Source of the DNA: Mytilus californianus
Taxonomy: Eukaryota
NCBI RefSeq assembly: GCF_021869535.1
Contig: NW_026262745.1
Span: 93,930,001-93,994,000, forward strand
Length of the DNA: 64,000 nt
Direction of reading: 5' to 3'
The notes under the pieces were generated by a model. It saw only the letters and a program-made list of their open reading frames with translations. It had not been told where the DNA came from and ran no database searches. Shown here one piece after another: positions 3,951-64,000 of this stretch (the stretch's first letter is position 1; every line of letters starts with the position of its first letter). The position numbers and the translations under genes were made by a program.

Positions 3951-4469
3951 TTATAACGTCAATAAGACAAAAATAACCAAAATATATATCTACAGGATCA
4001 CACTCCGACGTCAACAAAAGACAGGGCCTGTATGCATAAAGCTACAAGTTTAAGTTAAGATATCCAATCGTAATACTAATTCATTGTAGGACATGAAGAA
4101 AAATCCGTCCGTTCGGAACAAATCTTAAGGTGTTTATGCACTATGTCAAGCTCAAAATCTTCTGGAGTCTTTAAAATTTATATCATCACCGAGTTATCTT
4201 AATAAGTTGATATTCAGTTTGAGTAATGTATTAATAATAATAATTGCTGTAATTTATCATTTATATCAGACTTTTAGTTTTAGATTTTTCAGAGTCAATA
4301 TTTTTTTTATTGTCATGATTGTAGACTGGTTTTAAAACGAACAAATTATATTGCTGCACATGCAAAAAATGCTAAGTTGAAGGTGATATATCGGTGTTTT
4401 AACCAATTTTTATTGATATCAAAAGGTTTTAGTTTAAAAAAAGATTATATATAATCTTAAAATTTGATA

Positions 4470-5960
4470 AAAAAAATTGAGAATGGAAATAGGGAGTATG
4501 TCAAAGAGACAACAACCCGACCAATGAGCAGACAACAGCCGAAGGCCACCAATGGGTCTTCAATGCAGCGAGAAAATCCCGCACCCGGAGGTGGTCCTCA
4601 GCTGGCCCTAAATAAAATTGTGTGCTAGTTCAGTGAAAATGGACGTCACACTAAAATCCAAAACATATAAATGAACTAAAATTAAAAAACATACAAGACT
4701 AACAAAGGACAGAGGCTCCTGACTTGGGACAGGCGCAAAGATCCGGCGGGGTTAAACATGTTTTGTGAGATCTCAACCCTCCCCCTATACCTCTAGTCAA
4801 TGAAGAAAAACGAAACACATAGCAATACGCACAGTAAAACTCAGTTTAAAAGAAGTCCGAGTCCGATGTCAGAATAGGTAACAAAAGAAACTAAGCAAAA
4901 TGACAATGATACATAAATGAACAAAGGACTACTAGCAGTTACTGACATGCCAGTTCCAAACCTCAATTAAACTGATTGAAAGATTATGTCTTCATCATAT
5001 GAAAATCAAGTACAATCCCTCCCATTAGGGGTTTAGTATCATACCATCATACAATATATGAGAAGAACATAACCCGTATAATGCCAACAACTGGTTTTAG
5101 AATAAATGTGTTTATTTCCGATGCAAAGACCCTATGAGTGAATCAATATATACCAAAATATGCAATCCTTAATGACTTGACAACAGTATCGTAACTATAT
5201 TCTTTCCGAATAAGTCTGTTTAAAGGTTTGGTTAGCTTTTGAGGTGAATGCCGACATTTTTGTGCTTTGTAAAGAATATTAACATAAAATATTGGATGTG
5301 AAATACCTGAACGTATAAGATGTCTGCATGTTGATTTATATTTACGAATGATATCCTTGCACCGATGATAAAATTTAGTAAATGTTTTGACTAGTTTGTG
5401 ATATCGAAAACCCTGGTGTAATAATTTTTCAGTAATACAGAGATTTCTTTCGTTGAAATCAAATACGTTGTTACATACACGAGCGAATCGAACAAGTTGA
5501 GATATATAAACACCATAAGATGGCGACAAGGGAACGTCACCATCTAAAAATGGATAATTAACAATTATTATAGGAAATGAAAAATCATCTCTTTTATCAT
5601 AAATTTTGGTATTAAGTTTCCAGTGTTCATTGTTAGTAATAGCTTTATTTAAAGTCAGTTCGGCAGGATAAATATCTTTAGTATACATACTGAAGTCGTC
5701 ATTTTTGAGAGCCAATATATCATCTAAATATCTAAAAGTGTTATTAAATTTTTGAATCAGATGTTGTTTCGATGGGTCTTTACAGATTTTAGTCATAAAT
5801 TGTAACTCATAACAATACAGAAACAGGTCCGCAATAAGTGGCGCACAGTTAGTCCCCATGGGAATTCCGATAACCTGACGATATACGGAATCTCCATAGC
5901 GAACAAAAATGTTATCTAGTAAAAATTCAAGGGCAGTTATAGTATCTTACAGATTACACA
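4470..5960 (-). mobile_element. 5'-truncated Penelope-like retroelement: defective RT C-terminal half (ORF 5143-5859) plus about 670-nt 3' region
   Basis: Motifs GIPMGTNCAPLIADLFL, FRYLDD, IYDKRDDFSFPI and SYGVYISQLVRFAR are typical of PLE reverse transcriptase. The expected FLD motif before KLNTKIYDK is missing, indicating an internal deletion. Confidence 0.85.
4711..4794 (-). ncRNA. Twister-ribozyme-like motif, P5-type permutation, in the PLE 3' region
   Basis: Minus strand reads AGAGGT-ATA-GGGG-GAGGG-[TTGAGATCTCACAAAACATGTT]-TAA-CCCC-GC-CGGATCTTTGCG-CCTG-TCCCAAGT-CAGG-A-GCCTCT. This matches the twister core (UAA, P2, T2, P3, P4, L4 UCCCAAGY, GAGGG). P1 is non-canonical. Confidence 0.75.
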
Positions 5961-7714: not shown

Positions 7715-9142
7715 GGGGACGACCATTTGATATTCTGGGGGGGGGGGGGGGGGGGGCAGGAGGATTTTGAAAATAAATAACTCAGCCTTGATAATAACAA
7801 AAATGAATGGTTTGTTCTGTGGTAGTTTGAACATAAATAACCTGACCTACAATGTATTGAAAATAAATAACTCGGCAGGTCTTTTAAGCCATTTTATAAA
7901 TGCTATTCAAAAGTATGAAATGGCACCAGATTCCTACAAAATTCGTCTTTTTTCATATTTTTTTCGGAAAATTCTTTCCAAATCTTTTATAATGCAATGT
8001 ATAAATATTAATGTACTTGAAATATCTGAAAATGGGTTTCATTTAAGTAGAGGTATATTAACTCAGGAACATTTACCTCACTTTCATAAGTCATAGGGCT
8101 GTAACTAAATTGAGGCAAATGCCTCAGGTAGGAAATTTCAAAAACAAAAGCTTGTCTTCATATCAAATTGTTTTTACTTCGAATGCCTTGCAAGAAGCAA
8201 GTTCTGTTCACCCTCTGGCATACAGCCCCTGTTTTTCGTGATCCATGTTTCACATTTAATTTTAGTTTTCAGTGTTATTTGTCTATAATGTTTGCCGTTT
8301 TGTGTTTTATCGGTTCCAGGGTTTGTCTGTTGTTCATTGATTGCCCTTCTTTATTCTCTTAGTGTTGCATTCCATTTGTAATTTAGTAATTTTTTTAAAC
8401 TTGAGTTTAATTTTATTTAAGGACTTTTTATCTAATTTTACAAACTACATGAATTTCAAATTGTATCTCAGTTAGGAAAAAGATCAAGTTGTAATTGAAA
8501 TGTGTTATAAAAACTTACCTGACATAGTTATATCAATGATAATCAACCCCTCTTAACTTAATTTGAGAACAAAAACACATAATTGACAGGTATATAAAAA
8601 AGATTTTATGCAAGCCAAAACATTAAAAAAAAAAACAAAAAAAAGCAGCCACATACTTAAGTTTCTGAATTACACTTGTTGCTTTATCCTACATATTGGT
8701 CTTTTGATGTTGTCCCTAAAAACAAAAAATCTTACACTGAATCTATATATTTTGCTTTGAGACCAACATATTGTCTTCTTGTGGCCTTCAGCGGCTCCCA
8801 AAACCTTCGCCAATTTTTTTGGCCTCGCTCCGCTCGGCAAATATGTTTGGCATTACTTTAAAAAGAGGCTTAGTTACAGCCCCACTTTAAATGGTACATA
8901 ATGATTTGACTATACACTTATTATCTATTTAGGAATAAAACAAAAATTTAAAATTGTGTGTTTTCAAATATTATAAATATAATTGTGAAAATAAATAATC
9001 AGTCCCTTGTTTTAATGAAAATGAAAAACCATGCTTCATCAGTGTAGAAAATAGATAATCTCTTCTTCTAGTTCACAAAAATAAATAACTGATCCAAAAC
9101 AAATCCTCCTGGCCCCCACCAGAATATCAAATGGTCGTCCCC
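7715..9142. mobile_element. Non-autonomous PIF/Harbinger-like TIR element
   Basis: TIR GGGGACGACCATTTGATATTCTGG at both ends. Direct TTA repeat at 7712-7714 and 9143-9145. Confidence 0.8.
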
Positions 9143-10866: not shown

Positions 10867-13265
10867 TTATATCGGAGCTTATTGGACCACCTCCATACCT
10901 ACCTAATACAATCTCTATGGGCTGGACAAAAGCGACACTGCATGTTCGAGTTGGTTAAAACATTTTGCGTACACTTTAGTTTGGGAAAGCTATGCATTTG
11001 ACAAAGTAATAAGAGTAGGCAATATGTGTTTTTTTTTTAGAATAAACGCGAAATAGCAACAAATCCGTTACACATAGACTAAACTAAGTGTTTGTATATA
11101 AATTTTTCAAACAGTTTTTATTTTTTGTTTTTAACAGCAGATCTGAAAAGTCTGAAACTATAATTGTTAAGTTTAAGTTTAAGTACTGGTCATATGTTTT
11201 GCTTGAAGTAAATCTAGAACTGTCAAGTAGCTTTTCAGATAATTTAATATGTTGTTATTTCTTTCAAAAAAAAAGTAACTGGAAATAGCATCCTCTCTGA
11301 GGGTATAACCAGCCCACAAGTCAGTACTTCAGTGTTGCATGAACTATCATTGATATAGTCATAATCTTAAATCAACCGGATCCATAAATTTTCATAAAAG
11401 GGGGATGGGCACAGACTACCATAAGAGGGGGTCCGCTTCAGTGATTCCCTAAGTAATCAACCAAATATTTTCAACAAAAAAGGGGGGGCTTTGACCGTTT
11501 ACAAAACTTTTTTTCTCTAAATTCTAAGGATTTTCTACCACAGGAATAGATTATCTTGGCCGTTGTTTGACCTATATTGGTTTACTTTTACAAAGTGTGA
11601 CTTTGATGGAGAGTTGTCTCATTGGCACTCATACCACATATTCTTGTATGATCTTATATCTGTCTAAGTCGTATTTGGCAAAACCTCAGTTTTGGAATTT
11701 TTAGGTCAACAATGTTCTTCAACTTAATTCGTACTGTATGTGGCCTTTTTAACTTTTTGATTCGAGCGTCACTTTGTAGACGAAACACGCGTCTGGCGTA
11801 CACAATTTTAATCCTGGTATCTTCTATGATGTTTTTATTTATTGACTGCAAGCAATAAGTCAGAAAATTAACTGAAAGACTAACATAACAATTGCTTTAT
11901 TTTCATGACCGTTTCATGTGTTAGTCCAGTAATCATTTACACTGTTTAAATTTTCCCTCTCGAACAAACTTATGTACTCCAGTTGTCTCGAACCTGTTAC
12001 AAGAACGATAACTCGTGTTGTTAAGCAATGTCAAAAATTAGCACTCAATATTTCTCTATTTTCATTGAGACACAACATACTGTAGTTACGCATTAGTTAA
12101 ACAAAAGGAACATCGCATTGGAATTGGGAGACTTAGATGCATATAGAAGCTTAAAGGTTTGCACGTATTTAACTTTAATATGATTTTAGATTATGTTGCA
12201 TTGAATGAGGAAGTAGAATATACATACAACATGTACATTAATGTACGAACTCGTCTTGTGTTTATATTTATCTATTTTCATTATTTAGATTTGCAGCGTT
12301 TAAATCCTTTTACTAAGTAAATAAGTTTGAATTGAACAATTTAATTAAAGACTGTATCTTTAATGAATAAAACGAACAAAATATAACACAAACTGACGAA
12401 TTTACTATTTAGTTTACAAAAAATTGAACATTCTTCCAAGAATTGATCGGTGTTAATGAGTGAAATAGGTCATGATTTGAAAGTTCTAAAAAAAAATACC
12501 CACAAGATTCCAGAGGAACAACAATTTAATTTTCTGTGGAGGGGTGACAATATAAACTTATTGATCATGTGATTAAAAAAAATATTTAAGGATATCATTT
12601 TAACATCTACATATTTTGTAGGTATTGAAGATCTTTGAATACATGACTTAAATGTGTACTATTTATTAGTAATAATAACATTGATTCTGTTTTGATTACA
12701 TCGAATACTTCAGGTTGATGGAACGCCCTCCTTACGCTGAAGAGGCTTTACAACAACAATTATTATATCATGAACATAAAACGAACTTGCGGTATAGGCT
12801 TTGTTCATTGTTGTAGGCCGTACGATGACCTATAGTTGTTAATTTCTGTGTCATTTTGTTTCTTGTGGAGAATTGTCTCCTTGGCAATCATACCACATCT
12901 TCTTATTTTTATATTGACCTGTTGCACGTTAAAAAAAAATGTCCAAATCAAAATGCCGTTTTGATATAGAGGTTGTTTTTATCCCATTCGATCTTTTGCT
13001 ACTTTTATGAACCTACCTATTGCACGTATTGGATAAATGTTAATATAAGACGAAGAAGATGTAGTAGAATTGCCAAGAATAAATATGTTCTTGGCCGGCC
13101 TGAATATTCTCGAAATGTTTTCCACTGGACTTTGAACAAACAACATTAAATATTTGCCACTGGACGTCAAACAAATAACAATACACCAAATTAATAAATC
13201 CTGCATGCATATAAGGCAAATTTATTTACTTTCAAGCTCAATGTGTACTAGGTCATGTAGGTATT

Positions 13266-26590: not shown

Positions 26591-29347
26591 CAGTCAGACC
26601 CTACAGGTCGTGCCTCTTCAAATGTGATATGTCTAAAAACAAGAGCAATTTTTTGTTGATCCCCGACACAATTTCATGTTACTATTATAGTATATTTGTA
26701 CAACTATTGTTACCTAGCATACGAAAGATAACGGACTTCGATAAGTCGGAGATATTAATAATAAAACCACACATTTCTCTTAACAGGTAGGCCACTTGAA
26801 TTTTATGTTTGAACAAATAAGACTTATTCATTTAGGTAGCTTTAGATTTATTGAATATAGAAAACCCACTTCTATTCGTTAATTCGTACTATTGAGTTGA
26901 TCAGAACCATTTTAAACCAGACATACGATCGATAGTAGTATTTTGAGGTGAACGCGCTCTTGGCATGATAAATTTGTAAATATTCATGAATTGTTATGAA
27001 ACTTGGACAAAAGCTAATCTTCAAGATTAAGAAATCGTTTGGATAATTACATTTGTTTTCTGTGTTTATCTGATAATTGGACTTTCTTTTTACAGTCAAC
27101 TTTACACTTTTACACTGACAACAATTATCGCAGACAAGACACAGGGCTCCACGGAACCGTTTTCGAATTGTTTTGTATGCATTGCAAATACATGAGTGTA
27201 CATGTATGAACTATACCTGTTTGAATGGTTTTACACTAGTCATTTTTGAGCCCTTTATAGCTTGCTGTTCGGTGTGAGCGAAGGCTCCGTGTTGAAGGCC
27301 GTACTTTGAACTATAATGGTTTACTTCTACAAATTGTGACATGGATGGACAGTTATCTCATTGGCACTCATACCACATCTTCTTATATCTATGAACTGAT
27401 ATATGAACAAAACGATTGGAAAGGTCGCTAGGTCTGACCAAAAACCCCCAAAAAATAACACTCCCACTATTCATGCAGGAAAAAGTGTTGTTTGGCGTAC
27501 AATTTACACTCTAAGGGTTCTTTAAATTTTGATATTTGAAATGGTGGAATATTAAAACATTGTTATTCCATATACGATAGCAAACGGAAAATCTTTCAAT
27601 CAGCTGACTCGATGCGCGACTACAGGAGAATTTATTTTTCATACATTTAACCAGGACTATTTTGCGCGGTTTTAGCAGTATTTGGATAAGTTCTCTTGTA
27701 GAATTGTCGGAAAATGATAGACTTAATGAAAATTTTGTTATTGAGTTTTATGGGAATAAAACATAAAAATCATCACACGAATTACCGAAAGATATGATTC
27801 ATATATTGTACAGTACGACAAACCACGACAGACCACGACAACCAACAACACCCGACTCATCCGAAAAAAAACAACCCCAAACAATCAAACAAACAACAAC
27901 AAGCTACACATGGTCCAGATAACCAGACAAGGTATAGGCACACAATGTGGTGGGGTTAAACTAGTTTTACGTGCACATACCCCTCACCATCTGCCTATTT
28001 AGGCCAGTAAAACTCCTTATTGAAAAAGATTTGTCAAGTGGACCTACCAACAGGATTCATTTTTCTGTCGTTAAACATGGTTTACATTACCTGAGCTGTA
28101 TTTGGCAAAACCTTTTGAAATTGGCCCTCAATGCTCTTCAACTTCGTACTTTAGTTGGCCTTTAACTTTTTTGATTCGAGCGTCAATGATGATTCTTTGT
28201 AAACGAAATGGGCGCCTGGTATTCAAAATTATAAGCCTGGTATCTTTATAAAACAAAGACGATGTAGCAAGATTTTCTGAGTTGATTCCAATTTTATTCA
28301 AATAACGCGGAAGGTCTGCAGTGTGGTTTCAAAGTTTATATTTGTTCCCCCTTTTCTAAATGCAAAATTCTTTTATTCTTAGAAAATGGAACAAAACAGA
28401 ACCAAACTAAATTCAAGGTAAGAACATGTAACAATAAAAAGATGTGGTATAATTGCCAATGAGGGAGGCAAATCTCAACCAGAGACCAAATGACGTAGAA
28501 GTATAAGCAATTATAGGTCGCCGTGTGGCCGTCAACAATGAGCAAAACCCATACCGAACAGCAAGCTATAAAAGGCCACGAACAAGCATACATCACATCT
28601 TGTCCTTTTGGATTATTTGTGGTTACTTGCCTCTATCATTAACAATCCTTAACGCATGTGATCTTTTTGATTTTATGTTTTTAAATTGACATTTCACGTT
28701 TGAAGTGATGTAAGATCATTTAAATAAAATATGTAAAATTAACTCGTCGAAAGAAACACTTTCACAGAAACTGTTAGTACTGTGTTTTAATTATTCGCCC
28801 TATGCTTATCTGTACTAAGATCCATCCCCTGCATGGGTGGGTAGTGATTTTTTAGAGGGTGCAAAAAGCTTCTTATGTTTGAGTGTCTGTTCGTCTGTGA
28901 CCATTTAACTGGACATTATTAATGATACTTTGAGTGTACTAGGTTTTAAAGTTTTGAGTAGTAACTAAAGTTGAACAAATTCGGCACTAAGCTAGTTAGG
29001 AAAATTTTCTTGTCAAAGATGAGGGTTTTGCGAATTTTATCTTGTTGTATTATAATATTTTAAAATAATATAATCTAATATCATCACTCTTTATATGAAA
29101 TCATGAAATATAAATATAAGATTAATAAAAAATATATTTGAAATGAAATGATTCGCCAATTATTTCTTTAAATTTTAAATTTTCGTGATCTGTTAAAAGG
29201 GTGAATTTTGAGAATTAAATCTTATTTTTTGTTTGACTATAGATGTCATGATTTTAAATATTTGTCGTTTTTATAATTGTTACTCATTTGAACTTGGATT
29301 AACACTTTACTTCGTCAATGCATTCTTACATTTTATTTTCGTTTCAG

Positions 29348-37700: not shown

Positions 37701-40437
37701 AAGTTAACGAAATATAGTCTGATTAATCATTATACAGTCTTAATTAAAACCAAAAACAAACAAAAAACAAAAGTGCAAGAAAAGGGGGGGGGGGGGGGGG
37801 GGGGCGTTCGACTGCAATCCTAATTGACGAGGATTACCAGTTTGTCTATCGAAGGTCAGTGGTTCTCTTCGGGCACGCCTGGCTTCCTCCACCAATAAAA
37901 TCTTGCCGCCACAATAAAGCTTACTGAAGTGGTGTTAAACCCCAACAATCTATCAATCAATATAGATTAATATTATGCAAACACAAAACAAAATAAAACA
38001 AGTACTCTTGAGAATCGTTTTGCTTAGACCAAAGCACAAACAGCTTTTTATTTTCATATCATGTGACAGTTAGTGCAAGTTTTTTTGGTACTTTTTCCTT
38101 ACTATATTTTAAAGCAGAAAGTTGAATGCCTCCAACTCTACATAATTTATCGCAAGACTTATGAAATTGTACCTGGTACCCATGGCACAGTAAGACTGTG
38201 ATTGAGGGGTTAAGGAGTTAAAGAGCATCTTAGAAATCTTACTGCTTCAGCTGCCTCTCTCATAAACTGTTTTGATGGATCGTCCCAAATGGCTGGAACT
38301 GTTATAACAAAGTATAAATCGTCATCTTGTAAGGCATTTCTCAGACGTTCCTGTATTTTCTTCAATAGGTGGTTCTTTAAGTATTCTATGGCAAGGCTAA
38401 ATACTTTAAGTGCCTGCATTGGTTTGTCTGCCACATCATTGATCTCTGTTGTTCTGGTAACTCTCTGAAAAAATATCAAAATGATTCCAATTTTTGAAAT
38501 ACAAAAATAAAGTCTTTCGAACGACGTTCTTTTCTTTGAGGTAGATCATGTATCCGACAGTTATTTAGTTTATAAGGATACACGAAGCTAGAATTGTTCA
38601 GAAAACTACTTTTTCTAAAGTCTAGCGGTCAGTATAACAAGTTGAATTTGGTTGATTTATGAAGGCATTTACGCACTTAGACCTCCAACTTGGTGACAAA
38701 AGGGAAGTAACTCTTGCTCAAATTGTGTCAAGCGAAACCTACCTGTATTTCATTTCTTTAAAAAAGGAAGAATCATTTGAATCATTAGAATTGAGTCCCT
38801 TCTCGGAAATTTCCTGTAGATTACAGATCTTTGATAGTCTATATTAAATTTCGTTCTGCTTTTCTAAACTTGCCATAATTTAGAGCCTAATATATTGTAT
38901 AGACATTTTTCTGTTATTGACCTCTAGATGTGTTTGTTTTCGTGTCGTTGGGTTGCTTATTCGTTGACGTGAATCCCATGTCTCCTTTTATTAATTTCAT
39001 TACAACTCAAGGTCAATGTTCATAATGCACGATTTTTATAATCTTCATTTAGGATTGATTTTCAAGGTCAAGAGCCAAACTGATGTCAAACGTTTAGTTC
39101 AAAGCATAAGAATGCAAATAGATAATCGACAATCGACTCAAATAAAAATGGCCCCTTATATCAGATGTCAACCAGAGATTCAAGGTCAAAAAAGAGAGGT
39201 GAAAGGTACCAAAGGGATATTCAAACTCAAAAGTCTAAATTAAACTGACAACGCCCGAGCTAAAAAAGAAATAAGACCAACAGACAAACAACAGTACACA
39301 AAACACAACATAGAAAACTAAAGACGAAACAACACGAACCACTCCGGAAGGGTAAGCAGATCCTGCTCCACATGTTGCACCCGTCGTGTTGATCATGTTA
39401 CATTTGTTGTAGTACAAAGATACAGACTATTCGTTTAACGGTGCTAATTAAACATCAGTTAATTTGTTTTTCCTTTAAATTTTCATAATAGGTACTTTTT
39501 TGTTAAGTTGGTGATTGGTTGAAGTTTTTTTTAGCCACCAAATACTGTCACAAAAGTGCGTATGAAAGGAAATCGATGCTACTGTAACACAAAAAAAAAC
39601 CTAAATTTATGACGGTAATTGGAAAATACAGATGTGACAATTAGTTGTTAAAAGTTAAAATAAGAAGATGTGGTATGATTGCTAATGAGACCACAACTCT
39701 CCACAAGAGACCAAATGACATAGAAATTAACAACTATAGGTCACCGTACGGCCTTCAACAATGAGCAAAACCCATACCTCACTGTCAGCTATAATAGGCA
39801 CCGAAATGACAAATGTAAAACAATTCAAAATAGAAAAATAACGGCCTGATTTATGAACAAAATAATGAACGAAAAACAAATATGATATATAGCAACAAAC
39901 GACAACCACTGAAGTACAGACGCATACAGAATGTGGTGGGGTTAAACTAGTTTGAAAGCGCCAACCCTCCCCCTAACCTGGGACAGTGGTGTAACAGTAC
40001 AACATACAAACAAATTATAAAAATCAGTTGAAAAGAGCTTCACTCATCAGATCGATACAAAGCAGAAATACATCTAACAAAAACTCAGACCGGAAGTGGC
40101 AGACGGTACTTATACATCTCCACAACAAAACAAAAAAAAAAACCACAAAGTACAGATCTGAGAGTACTCGCAGTTACTGACAGCTACTTTTGTACTTATT
40201 TCAATGTAAAAGCTTAAACTTTGCATACAAAAAAGATTTCCAAAATTAATTTTACATATTTATCAGGACAGCACTTCGCTTACATATAAGACTCGTCGTT
40301 GGCGCTCGAGAAAAAAAAAGAGATAAAAGACCAAATAATCACAACGAAGTTGAAGAGGAATTTTTAATCAAATTTTTTCAAAGGTTATAGGAAACCTGGA
40401 GCGGCTTTGGTTGTCGATGTCTTAGGTATAAAAAACT

Positions 40438-43544: not shown

Positions 43545-44066
43545 ATAACTGCAAGTACTCTAAGATCTGTACTAAAGTGTCATTTTGTTGTTGGGATGTA
43601 CAAGTACCCGTCCACGTCCACTCTGTGTTTTTGTTAGATGTATTTCTATTTTTATCCATCTGATGAGTTAAGCCTTTTGCAACTGATTTTTATAGTGTGT
43701 TCTTATGTTGTAATGTTACACCACTGTCCCAGGTTAGGGGGAGGGTTGGGCGCCCGCTAACATGTTTAACCCCGCCACATTCTGTATGTGCCTGTCTCAA
43801 GTCAGGTGCCTGTAATTTAGTGGTTGTCGTTTGTTGCTGTGTTAGATATTTGTTTTTCGTTTATTATTTTGTAAATAAATTAGGCCGTTGGTTTTCTCGT
43901 TTGAATTGATTTACATTTGTCATTTCGAGGCCTTTAATAGCTGACTATGCGGAATGGGCTTTGCTCATTGTAGAAGGCTGTACGGTGACCTATAGTTGTT
44001 AATTTCTGTGTCATTTTGGTCTCTTATGGAGAGTGTCTCATTGGCAATCATACCACATCTGTTTTA
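43545..44066 (+). mobile_element. Abundant ~520-bp non-coding retro-like element with twister-like core; mostly 5'-truncated or partial copies at about 11585-11650, 12790-12910, 13826-13955, 14032-14200(-), 24745-24862, 27225-27390, 28430-28592(-), 36418-36494(-), 44600-44960(-), 46315-46472, 46485-46545(-), 50420-50560, 54335-54435(-), 54520-54610 and 62090-62420
   Basis: Shared 3' end GAAGGCCGTACGGTGACCTATAGTTG...GTCTCATTGGCAATCATACCACATCT with variable 5' extent, the pattern expected of target-primed retrotransposition. Confidence 0.8.
43730..43812 (+). ncRNA. Twister-like motif (P5-type) with two point changes
   Basis: CAGGT-TA-GGGG-GAGGG-[TTGGGCGCCCGCTAACATGTT]-TAA-CCCC-GC-CACAT-TCTGT-ATGTG-CCTG-TCTCAAGT-CAGG-T-GCCTG. 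L4 has TCTC instead of TCCC, and the A after P4 is T. Confidence 0.65.
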
Positions 44067-47000
44067 TAATTATGATCACTGTGGAACTTCTTAGATTAAT
44101 CCACCACTAAGACCCTCAAAAGATACTGAGAAAAGTGAACAACATAAAGAAAAACCATTCAACTACTTAATATCGGTATTACAGTCAACAAAAAAGACAC
44201 ATGCAAGAGGGTCTAGATAGAGTATAATGGGCAACAAAAAAAAAAAAAAAAAAACAGAATAGAGATATATAGGCATAACAAAATAGAATAATTGGGGACT
44301 TAAATATAAACAATAGACAACAATTGGCAAAAAACATACAAAAAAATAGAGAAAAAGAAAGAACCCCATCCAGACCATCGTGCATGTAATCAACAGTATT
44401 AAAGATTGTTTTGAAGATTTTGAAAGTTAAACTTTGTTCAAAATACTTAATTTGTTGTTTCAATAATCATACCGTTCTACACTCTAATATCGGCCGCAGT
44501 ACTTCAAAGTTAGAAACAATCTAAAAATGTTTGGATATTTATAGCACCTGTACCTCTGATATTAAAGAAGTGCATATCTTTCTTTTTTAATGCACCAATG
44601 AGACCCTCAACAGATAATAATTGATTTGTGATTGTTTTACGCCGCACCAGCACAGCACAACAATAAATAACGGTCTAATTTATACAACACACTATATACG
44701 AAAATCAAATATGACAGACATGGACAAACGACAACCACTGAATTACAGGCTCCTGAATTCGGACAGGCACATTAAACCTACGACGGGGTTAAACATGTTT
44801 GTGAGTGCTGAACAACAAACCACCAACCCTCCAACCCTACCGGGGACAGTGGTTTAACATGACAATATAAGAACAAGCTGTACAATTCAATTCAGTTGCA
44901 AATGGCTTAACTCAATAGATCAGTAAGAAGCACAAACAAACCAACTATTATATAACATAAAAACAATAAACACAAAGTACAGATACACGAGAGATGATCC
45001 GGTCCATAACTTTCGATATCATAAGCAAACATTTCAATCAAAGTTATAAACTTATGTTGAAAAACAAGGTTGAAAATAATTAAAAATACCTTGCTTTGTT
45101 GAAGAAATGATGTCTTGGACGTCTAAATGAGAGAATGATTTTCACCTGTCGCCATGTTCGTCGAAAAAGCATCCAGGAAGTAAAATTGAAATGTCCATAA
45201 TAGACATTATGTTTATTGTGAAGGTCGTAAAATTTAAATAATAATAAAAAAAATATACCAAATGTGTGTACAGGCAATGTATATATGCAATGTATTGATT
45301 GTTTATCTATTTCCAGCAATTTTGGTCTTGTAAGGATATATTTTGCATAATTAATAATATTTGTTTAGGAAGTAGGACATTTATTTTTAATACGGTTTCA
45401 ATGCTTCAAAAACAGGTACTTGTTTGGAAATTGCATTCTTTTTATGAAAATTTAATGCAAATATAAAATACGCATTGCCTCGCTTATGCTTCTCTCTTTT
45501 AAAGCATCCATTTGCAGAGTTGCGTGTCAGTATACTCTGCCTCCCCCTTTCAATCTCCAATAGCAAATAGTTATTTATATTTCAATGCGATCTACGTGTA
45601 AATGAAAGAGGCGTGATTCTCTGGTTAACACAACATAAGGTACAGGAAAACCACCCGTTGCTTGTCACAGTTCCGCTAGCAATGTTATAAAGTAAAGATT
45701 CATTTATTTCATATTTGCGACATACATGTATCTATATATTACATGAATATACATGTCCATTTTATAACCATTCGGAACCTACAGCTTTTACTGTCCAAAA
45801 CGATGATAAAACCCTAAACACTTCTTGTCATTTAAATATAGATATTTATTTTTATTTTTACACTTGACCCGACGATCGATCGATCAAATAGTATACATAG
45901 TGACGTCGCAATTTTTGTAATCATTGTTTGTAAATCATGCGATCCAAGGCTACGTACGGCCGGATACGGAAACCGGATTAGAATCTATGAATTTTAAATA
46001 ATTTGTTATGTCTATTTTTCGATTTCATTACAAAAATATAAAATTCATTATAACGAATGAAATCTGTCAAAAGGAACTTGTAATATACACCGTTCTGTAA
46101 CTAGAACAAATTCTTAAAACATGTATGCACTAATGAATTCTTTAAAATTTGTGAAAATTTTAAATTCCTAATAAATATTTTTTTTTTATTTCAGATTTAA
46201 TACAAAATTAAAAAGCTGTTAAAACGAATTAAAATATTTAATTTCGAAATATATAGGTCCCTTTTTTTTTGGCTTCGTGAAAAGCAGACGTTTGTCTTCA
46301 AAGCAATATAAACATTTTACATTTGTCATTTCGGGGATTTTTATAGCTTACTATCCGGTATATGGGTTTTGCTCATTGTGGCACGGTGACCTTTAATTAT
46401 TAACTTCTATGCCATTTGGTATCTGGTGGAGAAATGTCTCATTGGCAATCATACCACATTTTCCTATTTTTATATGTATATAAAATAAGGAGATGTGGTA
46501 TGATTGCCAATGAGACAACTATCCGGCAGAGACCAAATGATATATGCCCATATTTGGCCCTAAACTTAAATTGAAAATAGCAATACATGATCTTGCTCTT
46601 AAACTACTAAGATAACATATTTTTAGAAAACAAAAAACTTTTTTTACATTTTTAAATAGGAGTTACCAATGGCAACAAACCATGACGTTTATTGGTATAT
46701 TTTTTGAAATTTCTTGATTTTTCTTGATTGGTATCAACTTTTGAGCAAATTTTGGATGGCAAAGTATTGGGACACCAAAAACACATACTCGATGGGATTA
46801 TGCTAATAGCTTTAATGAAAAATATTTGTTTTATAACTTTTGTTACTAAAATGGATGGAATACTTCGAAAATCAGCATCCTGCCTCATTCTTGAAATTAT
46901 GCGCATATGATGAAGTAAATTTGATAGTATTTTACATTATTAATATTGTCTAACTTATCTTTATATTTATTTTTATGCATTTCAATAAGTTATGATCAAA

Positions 47001-47840: not shown

Positions 47841-50800
47841 ATGGCAAAAAGTACAAAACAAAATGAAAAAGGAAAAGACAGGTGAGTAAAATGAATGATT
47901 GAAGTATAATTTGCATTTTGAATGGTTATTTTTAGACATATTGTAAAGCTTTAGATCTTAAGATCACAAACGCTAGTATATTCATGGTAGTTTAGTACTC
48001 GTTATACATGTGTAACTATGTTAATCTGGTGTCACAGTTTTCCAACTTATCATACAATAGTTTTTAAATTGATCTTTATTCTATAATTCAGTATTCAGTT
48101 ACAAAAAATAGGATAATCAAATATAAATTCAACTGATTATATTTGTTTTAAAGATGTCATTCTCGAAACTGAAAGTAGTTTCCTTCCTTCTCTTATAGTT
48201 GTGTCTAAACAAGAAAAGAGGATCAATATATTTTTTTATCTTACCTCCTATACATTTCTAGGAATAGGATTGGTTAAAAGCAACCGCGTGGAGATCGTGT
48301 ATATTCCATATTGGGTTAGTAGTCGGGGCTAATTTCAATACACGGTTAGTAGTGGTGTTACGTCTCTTTATAAAAACAACACGGTGTTGAGGAGAAATCT
48401 TAAAGGTTTCAACAGACGAAGAAATTGATGATGAACGATTGAAATAAATTAATAAAACACATTTAAAGCTAACATGTTGTAATTGTTGGCATTTGTTTTT
48501 GTATAGACCAATGGAAGAAGGTTCTTAATACTAACGGTATTGAAGACTTGATCACTTTGATAGGCCACTAGTCTAAATACCACATGTTTAGATAGTCGAT
48601 ACGATAAATTCGTTACATAGTGTGTTAGTGACCTAATACGATATTTATAGATTATCTATGGTTATCTGAACGAGATTGATTTTCTCGCTTGAGCCGGTAC
48701 GGCGAAAGCGAGAAAAGCAATCGATTTGAGATGACCAATGGTAATCTGTTTATCGCTATTTTACCTATGAAGACGTTGTTAATTTCCTTGACAACGGCAC
48801 GTGTTCCCTTAGTTTCTAGCGATAATTTTCATATCACTCGACTCCATTTTCATATCACTCGACTCCGCTGAGAACGGAAATTATCAGTCAACAAGATCAA
48901 AGGAAAAATTCTTAAAATAGCGATAAACAAATTTATATGGCGTTAGTAAATTCCATATGGGGATTCCAGCTTCGCTCTCACCCCATATATATCGTATAAG
49001 GTCACTAGCACACTCTGTAACTAATAATATTATGCCCCATTTTTCACTGATGTAAAGTGATTTAATATTTAAAAGTTTATTAAAAATTTTGCAAGGATAA
49101 AAAGAAAGACCCATCGCTTGCGATCATAACTATCAGTCGATTTTACCAAAATCTCTGTATAAAGATGATAAAGGGACGTGATTTCTGTGTACAAACAATT
49201 GATTTAATGCTTTTTAACACAAAGTTGACTGCTGTACCCCGATTTTTGATATTTTTACCTATTATGTCTGTTTGTTTTGTTCACACATTGTTGTCAATAT
49301 AATGGAATTTTATGAGACTGTCATACAAGTGAGAGGTTTAGCTAGCTATAAAACCAGGTTTAATCCACCATTTTATACAAAAGAAAATGCCTGTACCAAG
49401 TCAGGATTATGACAGTTGTTATCCATTCGTTTGAGCTTTTGATTTTGCCATTTGATTAGGGACTCTCCTTTTTGAATTTTCCTCGGAGTTCGGTATTTTT
49501 GTTATTTTACTTTTTAATATCCTAAGACGACGTAACAGTCGTAACCAGAAACAATTTGTTTTCCATGTTTGGTATCCAATTTGAAACAAAATTAAATTTC
49601 ACGTGTAACACCCCCCTCCCCAAAGAAAAAAAAGTTGAAAAACAAAAAAAGAAGTTTACTGTACATAGTGATACATTAACATATTATGACACATTAATAT
49701 TTTATAATATTTATTTTTTCAGCCATGAAATGGGTTCTGCCAAACTTTTTGTGGCTGCAATTGATTTTGGAACTACCTATTCTGGGTACGCATTTTCAGC
49801 CCGAAATTCTCCCGAAACCTTATACACGTGCGACTGGAAAAATAATAATTTACTGTCCAGGAAAGCTCCGACGTCCGTTCTTATTGACAATGACGAACAG
49901 TTTGTAGCATTTGGGTTTGATGCAGAAAACAAATATATGGCTAGTCTCGAGAATGATTCGGATTCAGATTCAGATGACAGTGACGAAGAGAAAAATCCTT
50001 CATGTAAAGCCGTATATCGTTATTTTAGTCGGTTTAAGATGGAACTACACGATAAGGTAATTTGAAAGGGTTTATATATTCACATATACTGTTTATTGAT
50101 TTTTTTTTTTATAAATGACCAATGGGAAATGAGTTCAGTTGAAATTGTTCCCTTTTTTTATCAAAGTTTTTTATTACTTCGATCAGCTCTTATCAAAAAA
50201 TGACTGTAGAAATATGGTTTCGTGTCGTTTAGTTTTTGCATGCCTGTTTCAGCAATTGCTATTTCCTGTCGTACATTTTTAAAATTTACAGATAACATTT
50301 ATAGAGCTAATTGAAGGCACGGACGGTATTGCAATCAAAAGCCAGAATGTTTCTTGCATTTCTTGTGACCGATTATGATTTTTATAATTTTTCTACCATT
50401 ACGAAGTTGGTCTTGTTCGCAAATTAGTTGTTTTGTTATAAATTACTAGGCCGTTAGTTTTCTCGTTTGATTTGTTCGACATTTTTCATGGCGGAGTCTT
50501 TTATAGCCAATTATACGGTACGAGTTTTCCCCATTGTTGAAGGCCGTACGGTTGCCTGTATTCTTATATTGACTAATCTTCTAAATTGGAATAGTCTCCA
50601 GTGCTTGGGATTCGATCCTAAAATAACTTGTATAGGATATAGTCTTTTTCCTTATTTCTTTAACGGTCTGGCTCTCATCGATGTATATTTTAAACATACT
50701 TGAATTAATGATTTCGTCTTTTTGATTTATTCGAAAAAAAGTATATGCATTGTGATATAAAAGTAAAATTTAACATTAGTGTTAAAAGGACTGAAAAAAA

Positions 50801-60302: not shown

Positions 60303-60402
60303 ACTGTCATATTCCTGACTTGGTACAGGCATTTTCTTATGCAGAAAATGGTGGATTGAACCTGGTTTTATAGCTAGCTAAACCTCTCACTTGTATGACA
60401 GT
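60303..60402 (-). ncRNA. Twister-like motif, second variant, inverse copy
   Basis: Same architecture as 49317-49416. 8-bp P3 CATTTTCT/AGAAAATG; the triplet at the predicted cleavage site is CAA. Confidence 0.65.
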
Positions 60403-61960: not shown

Positions 61961-64000
61961 AGTGGTCCATAAGTGACTGGTTGTTTGGCAAAATTATTTC
62001 ATACTGGTTTTGACTTTGATATCTTTTTCAATGGTTTATGATTTAACTATTTGATAATTTGGTTTTCATGGTCTAATTTTTGTCTAAAATCTGTTAGTAT
62101 TCATACTTTGATGAGTTGAGCCTTTTTCAGTTAATGTTTTATTGTGTGTCCGTTTATGTTGTATTGTTACACCACTGTTTCAGCTTAGTGTAAAGATTGG
62201 CGCCAGATAAAACGTTCAACCCCGCTGCATTTGTTTGCACCTATCCTAAGTCAGGAACCTGATCTTCAGTGGTTGTCGTTTGTTGATGTGGTTCATAAGT
62301 GTTTCTCGTTTCTCGTTTTTTATATAGATTAGACCGTTGGTTTTCCTGTTTGAATGGCTCCGTGTTAAAGGCTGTACTTTGACCTATAATGGTTTACTTT
62401 AAATTGTGACTTCAATGGTCACGACTAAATACATATTCCAGTACATGCATGCAATTAAATTCGTAGGCAGTCTAACGCATCTTATGGACGTATATTGCAA
62501 AGACTAACTGAAACATCGATGTAGTCCGTGTTTTCACAATGCTTAACTTGATGTCCCAGTCCACTTTAGATAAGCGTTCTACCGATACTAGAAAGTCTGC
62601 TTCATATCTTCATCTGTTTGATTAATGTTGACACATATGGTCGAATTCAAACTAGAATCTTTGACAAATGTGATGATTTCAAACTTTTTTCAATAGTCAA
62701 TTTCCTATTTCTCAGCTGTAACATAACTTCTGCCCATTGTTTGGCGTTTTTATGGCCGTTGAATGTCGGGCAACTTTTTTTTCACATTGCCCAGCCTGAG
62801 GACTTCCGTTGACGATGAGATATGTAACAGGGTCCAATCCAAATTTACTAACCTTCATTCCGGTCAACAACTATTACAATACATACCAATTGCATTTATT
62901 TTTTTTAAGTGGTTCTCGTCCTGAACATGTATGAAATATTTGCCCCTAATGTCAAACAAGCTTCAATTAATCAATTGTCTAAAAAATCTTAAAATACGAG
63001 CTTATTACTGCACATGAAGACATAACCGACTGTTTTTTTTCTCACTTGGCAATGCAATTAAATATCAAATTTCTATGACTATCTACATTTTTTAAACATT
63101 TTGTTTCAAACCAAAGACTTGTATGGTCATGGTTTTTGTCGGAAATTTATGATAACGAGATTGTGGAATACGTTTGCATACCCTCTTACCATGGGATGGA
63201 AGAGGTGGTTTTATACACAAACGAGCCATCATTCTAAAGGCAAATTAATTGTATGTATAGTGTGCAGCTTGCATTTCTGTACAATACAAGAGGTAGACAT
63301 GCTGCTGACATCATTATCTCAATTGAATATGAAAGGAAACGGCGAAATGGCCTTATCAGACTAACATAGGTCACAAAGATTATGTAAAAAGTCATGCACG
63401 TAGGATAAAGTTGAAGATGAAAAACATTTTATATGTCAATGTCCGCTATATAATCTTTTGAGAAATGAGTTATATTATACAATTTCAATAAGTTGTAAAA
63501 AATTCGAAAAGTTTAAACACATGTGCCAAGTTTTAATTGGCTTTTTAATCAAGAAAAACCTAGAGGTATTAGAAATTATTGCAATTTATATTAATAAATG
63601 TTTTGAACTCCGAAAACTATCAATATAGTACAGATATGTTTTTATGTAAGCCTTAAGTATATTTGCCGGTTAATATTACATATAACTGTTATGCTTTTTA
63701 CTTATAAATGTATACTTATATGCTTATGGCTCTGGTATGGCGATGGTTTAGCATTTTATAATTGAGATGATTATATTCATGTTTATACATATGATTTTCA
63801 ATACTATTGTGTCAATTATCTAAATCATTGTAATAAATTATTTTGCTCTTCATGGGTCCTTTAATTGGAATAAAAATATCTCATCTCATCTTATCTTATG
63901 TTATTAGTAAATGTATACTCCATCGGGGGTGAAGTTGGTATATTGCTGCTAAGTTGATGAAGATATATCAATTGGACCAAATCAGAAAAGCTTGGATTGT

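Follow-up and report, generated by a model that had tools for sequence, protein, structure and literature searches.

A type-P5 twister-class RNA module in the 3′ region of Naiad Penelope-like retroelements

The DNA analysed here, referred to as the window, is a stretch of 64,000 nucleotides from Mytilus californianus. Positions 4470 to 5946 hold, on the minus strand, a 5′-truncated copy of a Penelope-like element (PLE), placed in the Naiad clade of retroelements by its architecture. The copy comprises the C-terminal part of the reverse transcriptase (RT) frame (5143 to 5898, stop codon 5145-5143) and the 3′ untranslated region (3′ UTR). The latter contains a selenocysteine insertion sequence (SECIS; 4996 to 5060), a motif of 88 bases (4709 to 4796) and a 3′-terminal block (4470 to 4523) that is common to other repeat families. 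The 88-base motif has the fold of the twister ribozyme class in its type-P5 permutation. It is probably a copy of a self-cleaving module that has become fixed in the 3′ UTR of Naiads and, in tandem copies, in their pseudo-long terminal repeats (pLTRs).

Read on the minus strand from 4796 to 4709, the motif presents all elements of a type-P5 twister in order. The 5′ strand of P5, CUAGAGG (4796-4790), pairs with CCUCUGU (4715-4709) at the other end. A linker UAUA (4789-4786) leads to the 3′ strand of P2, GGGG (4785-4782), the partner of CCCC (4751-4748). The conserved catalytic guanosine position and the adjacent adenosine (4781-4780) fit the Rfam consensus GAGgG. They are followed by the 3′ strand of the pseudoknot T1, GGG (4779-4777), which pairs with CCC at 4728-4726. 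A linker of 22 nucleotides (4776-4755) spans the distance from T1 to the predicted cut site. In place of the P1 3′ strand stands a palindrome, UGAGAUCUCA (palindrome 1, 4766 to 4775). A further one, AAACAUGUUU (palindrome 2, 4754 to 4763), ends with the nucleotide 5′ of the predicted cut. The triplet U/AA (4754-4752) is aligned to UAA of the Rfam consensus, yielding a predicted scissile bond at 4754/4753. The P2 5′ strand (4751-4748) is followed by the GC of pseudoknot T2 (4747-4746, paired with GU 4723-4722) and a P3 hairpin of 12 nucleotides (4745-4734). P4, CCUG/CAGG (4733-4730 with 4721-4718), encloses the L4 loop UCCCAAGU (4729-4722), which is of the conserved YCCAAGY type and supplies its last two letters, GC in the twister consensus, to T2. 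The dinucleotide AG joins P4 to the 3′ strand of P5, resulting in the order CAGG, AG, CCUCUGU.

An earlier note, made from the letters alone, had proposed this element order, a twister-class fold in the P5 permutation and a location on the coding strand about 350 nucleotides past the RT stop codon. The comparisons given below bear these proposals out, and the catalytic-core letters that it named are all in place, as is the predicted cut site 4754/4753. Its description of the ribozyme as apparently intact is roughly right, but three private changes affect P3 and P5 and a P1 helix in cis is missing. The P3 hairpin, said to carry one mismatch, is present with two private changes. At two positions of P3 (4743 and 4740) and one of P5 (4709, where the last pair is lost), the window copy carries letters that hardly any RNA read or other copy shares. 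It is an old, decayed and truncated insert with weakened P3 and P5; modules in better condition occur at many other loci.

The fold was examined by comparison of copies. A search pattern reaching from GGUU at the T1 end through P4 matched the 1.65-Gb genome exactly at 11,727 places, while the reversed pattern, used as control, matched nowhere. The matches belong to several subfamilies with differing P3 stems, e.g. CGCA/UGCG, UGCAAA/UUUGCA and CACAU/AUGUG; P3 is a stem of 4 to 7 base pairs with variable sequence in the other copies. A covariance model (R1) was built from eight diverse modules and comprised nested pairs only, namely P2, the two outer pairs of P3, and P4. T1, T2 and P5 were left outside the model; consequently, their alignment was not fitted to them. 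Ten RT-bearing relatives with 47-76% protein identity were collected from seven other public assemblies. R1 matched the module in all ten, on the RT strand and about 215-740 nucleotides after the stop codon. Eight modules were matched in the window itself. A pattern scan of metagenomes found 19 further contigs, many of them labelled marine.

Compensatory changes support the proposed pairs. In eight hand-picked sequences, aligned with the pseudoknots written in, pairing holds in 99.2% of the cells, with compensatory change at 8 of 15 pairs. The values are 92.9% and 11 of 15 for 24 distinct sequences, and 95.2% and 11 of 15 for 33 distinct sequences. None of 500 shuffles of the 33-sequence set reached the observed values, a control that ignores shared ancestry. 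Sliding the partners by one to three columns keeps the relatedness and reduced pairing to 31-52%. In the same set, P2 pairs in 96.8% and P4 in 95.5% of the cells, each with compensatory change in three of four pairs. The first T1 pair is GC in 19 sequences, AU in eight and UA in one. Across families, T1 pairs occur as GC, AU, UA and GU, and in one subgroup T1 consists of just two pairs. At T2, the outer pair is GU (23), AU (6), CG (2) or UG (1), the inner one CG in 31 of 32. The 11 pairs with compensatory changes thus include both pseudoknots. A P5 helix of 5-13 base pairs, formed by unrelated sequences, is present in 22 of 24 distinct flank pairs (mean z -3.2 against shuffles). Every match scoring more than 55 bits retains the unpaired core letters: the G-A that precedes T1, the AA on the 3′ side of the cut, and the AAG of L4. 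At the cut site, nearly every copy reads UAA; three have CAA instead. When the 3′ UTR of the window element is compared with L069, alignment is confined to the twister core and the SECIS region; with L070, it is confined to a single stretch that includes the twister. Five more distant elements gave no BLAST alignment, yet R1 still detects the module. The twister-class fold is regarded as established.

Twister-P5 (RF02684) was the best of 4227 Rfam families in a search of 126 bases, with a full-length match of 23.6 bits (E 0.0023) in which the P1 part of the model was skipped as a local gap. A copy lacking the private changes of the window scored at the same level (23.0 bits). The element L073 scored 20.8 bits against the Rfam twister-P1 model, which has a cut-off of 67.2. 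At gathering thresholds, no twister was reported by Rfam in the window, and an E-value search of 701 bases missed the motif. A whole-genome search with RF02684 yielded none at E ≤ 10 among the 79 scored of about 36,000 candidates and is uninformative. Plain minimum free energy folding did not set the region apart from shuffled sequences (z 0.22), which is unsurprising given that the fold contains pseudoknots.

The host element belongs to a large family. A genome search with a 201-base stretch containing the motif gave at least 1,354 candidate relatives, of which the 40 that were scored show 95-97% identity. Another 29 copies of the element, with 92-97% identity, all stop at 4470-4473 on the 3′ side but start at various points on the 5′ side, which indicates 5′-truncated reverse transcription. 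The longest family copies reach about 3.67 kb; the window copy spans 5946 to 4470. Pfam returned no significant family for the RT fragments and a faint match to RVT_1 at best. The 356-amino-acid open reading frame (ORF) of a longer family copy, L064, has 4,207 homologues, and PLE-type RT motifs are present in P0002, P0006 and P0113. Three longer family copies, as well as L073, a related element from another assembly, carry N-terminal GIY-YIG endonuclease motifs before the RT. TGA codons occupy the same cysteine positions in three longer family copies of the own genome. The long frame of L073 is interrupted by three stops, each of them TGA; one lies in a U-x-C motif between endonuclease and RT. 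A SECIS follows the stop codon in the window element (SECIS_1, 32.5 bits), in L064 (32.2 bits; 9028-9092), in L068 and L069 (28-29 bits), in L072 (42.8 bits; 3956-4018) and in L073 (37.4 bits; 4143-4210), with only L072 and L073 above the gathering cut-off of 35 bits. With in-frame TGA at conserved cysteines and a SECIS after the stop codon, the element codes for a selenoprotein. The RT motifs agree with the Penelope-like identity proposed before, and the GIY-YIG motifs, the TGA codons and the SECIS place the element among the Naiads. No hammerhead match was obtained in about 33 kb of the elements examined.

The relation of the module to the pLTR is seen in L073. Its positions 1-564 are repeated at 4575-5138 with 99.8% identity, defining a pLTR-ORF-pLTR unit of 4,574 nucleotides. 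The twister module is located inside both repeats (220-299 and 4794-4873). The earlier note had advised placing the motif relative to the pLTR; this succeeded for L073, while the surroundings of the three longest copies in the family of the window element showed no pLTR repeat. Two modules of the same orientation, 350-1,200 nucleotides apart, follow a single RT gene in L073 (4446-4522 and 4794-4873), L074 (3850-3929 and 4612-4688) and L077 (4020-4096 and 5244-5325). Should both modules of such a pair cut, they would set free a small RNA in the manner of retrozymes. Alternatively, the paired modules may be nested tail insertions.

The region between T1 and the cut site measures 20-24 nucleotides and forms no stable monomer structure in nine families (0 to -2 kcal/mol). 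Palindrome 1 starts one or two U after T1. At least 13 sequences occur at this place, including UGAGAUCUCA, UGGAUCCA, UGGUACCA, UGGGCCCA, GGGCGCCC, GAGCGCUC, AUGGCCAU and UAGCUAGCUA. All are symmetric to the centre, a symmetry that a hairpin loop would not need. The centre itself is AU, UA or GC inside one otherwise identical subfamily. Homodimers through palindrome 1 are calculated at -13 to -21 kcal/mol. Palindrome 2, of the pattern AAAC..GUUU, comes in six variants, and the one in L070 needs G-U pairs for its symmetry. The tract crosses the cut site in several families. Since a P1 in cis is absent and the two tracts in its place stay self-complementary, two modules probably pair via their palindromes, either on two RNAs or through the two pLTRs of one transcript.

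The twister class has been described by Roth et al. (2014), as summarised in PMC8501958. The module shares with type P5 (RF02684) the elements P2, P4, L4, T1, T2, an optional P3, the open end in P5, the G-A pair of letters and the cut N/AA. It differs in the palindromes that stand where P1 would be expected, in the outer T2 pair and in the start of P3 right after the T2 GC. Twister variants have also been found at the 5′ end of Perere-3, a non-long-terminal-repeat retrotransposon (RTE) of Schistosoma mansoni, where they cut and serve retrotransposition (PMC8501958). Perere-3 likewise combines a twister-class ribozyme in a retrotransposon with a non-standard P1, whose 5′ strand is provided by the target-site duplication (PMC8501958). 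There, the ribozyme frees an element resembling a long interspersed nuclear element from the upstream transcript (PMC8501958). The Naiad module, in contrast, lies in the 3′ UTR or pLTR of a PLE, has the P5 permutation and carries palindromes for P1.

The pLTRs of canonical PLEs carry hammerhead ribozymes (PMC4209133), and small PLE hammerheads are cited as cutting in the form of dimers (Lunse et al., 2016, cited in PMC6765202). These hammerheads and the Naiad module have in common the type of host element, the place on the coding strand of the terminal repeat and the great abundance in invertebrate genomes. In both, the closing helix is truncated and self-complementary sequence is present, which makes pairing of two copies necessary. 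They differ in ribozyme class, with unrelated folds and cores. PLEs with an N-terminal endonuclease were reported to "lack canonical hammerhead ribozyme motifs"; hammerheads alone had been searched and twister is unmentioned (PMC8557442). Because the Naiad clade was reported without hammerheads, the twister sits where relatives carry a hammerhead, and not beside one (PMC8557442). The Naiads of clam and spider described there share with the present elements the GIY-YIG endonuclease, the CxC linker, the C-terminal RT, in-frame UGA at cysteines, the SECIS after the stop codon and copy numbers of tens of thousands (PMC8557442). Hence, the twister class, the twisters of Perere-3 and ribozymes in PLE repeats, hammerheads only, were already known. 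No paper linking twister with Penelope-like elements, Naiads or pLTRs was found in 8.4 million full texts, and the L4/P4 sequence was absent from the texts searched. A P5-type twister fixed in Naiads, with P1 replaced by two palindromes, appears to be an unreported combination.

As a self-cleaving module, the RNA would cut itself between 4754 and 4753 and take part in RNA processing. The conserved guanosine and the adenosine 3′ of the cut would serve as general base and acid in catalysis, yielding a 2′,3′-cyclic phosphate and a 5′-OH. Activity would be gated by the pairing of modules, as with the small hammerheads of other PLEs. Pairing could turn cutting on or off. Cuts in both pLTRs would produce a unit-length RNA.

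Transcripts were inspected in raw reads of four RNA-seq runs from two related organisms. In a related organism, read depth on 4674-4809 and 4473-4523 is about ten to a hundred times that of adjacent bins. The bins at about 4466-4517 are among the deepest, with loose read ends at 4473 and 4523-4524. At the borders of these blocks, reads leave the window sequence with consistent other sequence. Depth and border reads together identify the module and the 3′-terminal block as cassettes common to other, more expressed repeat families. Across the bin border 4751/4752, depth rises 1.45-1.86 fold for pairs with the first mate on the plus strand, compared with 0.89-1.19 fold for pairs with the first mate on the minus strand. 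This step is a weak hint at most, as most reads derive from other families that share only 4674-4809 and the libraries may be unstranded.

Several observations speak against a working ribozyme. The site is covered by RNA-seq reads of both strands, which run across it and show no accumulation of ends. In the genome, patterns starting 3 nucleotides after, at and 4 nucleotides before the cut have 13,926, 13,229 and 11,656 matches, respectively, a smooth loss of about 3% per base without an excess of 5′ ends at the cut. The 3′ fragment of a cut is therefore not a common template. A P1 helix closing the cut-site loop is missing, and the linker is no P1 hairpin; P1 is reported to be dispensable for twister catalysis. 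Pairing of palindrome 2 across the cut could hinder cleavage or its in-line geometry. In the family of the window element, a G-U wobble forms the outer T2 pair, and the A after the T2 GC of the Rfam consensus is absent, P3 following directly. Finally, the Rfam comparison suggested by the earlier note gave RF02684 as top family but a score 14 bits under its curated gathering cut-off of 37.6 bits.

The lack of read ends and of genomic starts at the site, the missing P1 and the low Rfam score would suit a structured, non-catalytic RNA with twister fold, which might, for example, offer RT or endonuclease a handle, signal dimerisation or packaging, or stabilise the 3′ UTR. The self-pairing tracts in place of P1 resemble a dimer linkage. 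Moreover, the one PLE studied in vitro, from Anolis, inserted uncut RNA, and cutting by its ribozyme was not needed (PMC11167929). Such a role is nevertheless rather unlikely, given that a scaffold would not need the unpaired core letters, yet these are kept across families in well-scoring copies. The hammerhead of the Anolis PLE cuts in vitro, yet no RNA-seq reads begin or end at its cut (PMC11167929), so the negative results from RNA-seq and genomic ends weigh little. A chance resemblance to twister, carried passively by a successful retroelement, was also considered. With the E-value scaled up, a few 23-bit matches to one model are expected by chance in a genome of 1.65 Gb; thus, the case for a twister depends on comparison and not on a single Rfam score. 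Most copies are young (92-97% identical) and their likeness alone is uninformative. Against this stand the compensatory changes in diverged families and other assemblies, including the two pseudoknots that were not modelled, and the P5 helix kept with unrelated sequences. The conservation relative to L069, confined to core and SECIS in the 3′ UTR, and the modules in the five BLAST-silent elements add to it, and chance is hardly credible.

The palindromes could act as DNA, e.g. as sites for a dimeric protein or for the GIY-YIG endonuclease of the element. Strict palindromes of 6-10 base pairs such as GGATCC, GGTACC, GGCGCC and GAGCGCTC are typical of protein sites, and PLE endonucleases recognise sequences in their own tail (PMC11167929). 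Among close families, however, the sequence varies freely and the symmetry alone is kept, which fits pairing better. The symmetry of palindrome 2 in L070 via G-U pairs is possible in RNA alone, and the tracts lie exactly at the expected place of P1. A function at the DNA level is accordingly regarded as improbable. Self-cleavage by a twister-class module with palindromes that pair between copies remains the preferred explanation.

A wider proposal is put forward tentatively, with the balance against it. All PLEs may need a self-cleaving ribozyme of any class in the terminal repeat, Naiads having a twister for a hammerhead, with a convergent, palindromic and crippled closing helix and pairing-dependent activity. 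The ribozyme would then be a general requirement of the PLE superfamily and not a quirk of some clades. Two unrelated ribozyme folds would have converged in one niche on the same dimer-prone design. Cutting of a tandem transcript in both repeats would release unit-length RNA with ends fit for ligation to a circle, and reverse transcription past one turn of the circle could explain partial-tandem pLTRs. For twister, a class with few assigned functions, this would be a second role in retrotransposons. Naiads are among the most abundant invertebrate retroelements and the sole endonuclease-bearing PLE group described without a canonical hammerhead. Their thousands of natural variants represent a test system for the control of cutting by pairing between copies. 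The curated Rfam cut-offs miss the whole family, and twisters are consequently probably under-counted in genomes of molluscs and other invertebrates.

The window harbors seven further modules of at least four other subfamilies, whose R1 scores run from 80 bits for a well-kept module to 28 bits for a decayed one. The well-kept second twister module belongs to another subfamily, lies on the plus strand at 43733 to 43808 (80 bits) and carries the palindrome GGGCGCCC. The others are located at 49325-49407 and 62184-62257 on the plus strand and at 27921-27987, 39906-39977, 44750-44827 and 60312-60394 on the minus strand. In two copies from the same genome, L035 and L043, the G-run of P2, G-A and T1 forms one tract of about 14-15 G, and the conserved A is gone, which suggests slippage at the G-rich core. 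In L056, also from the same genome, the region of the RT YLDD motif is joined to the module a few bases before the cut site (about 1,890, minus strand). The intervening part is deleted, and the two sides share a short ATG at the joint.

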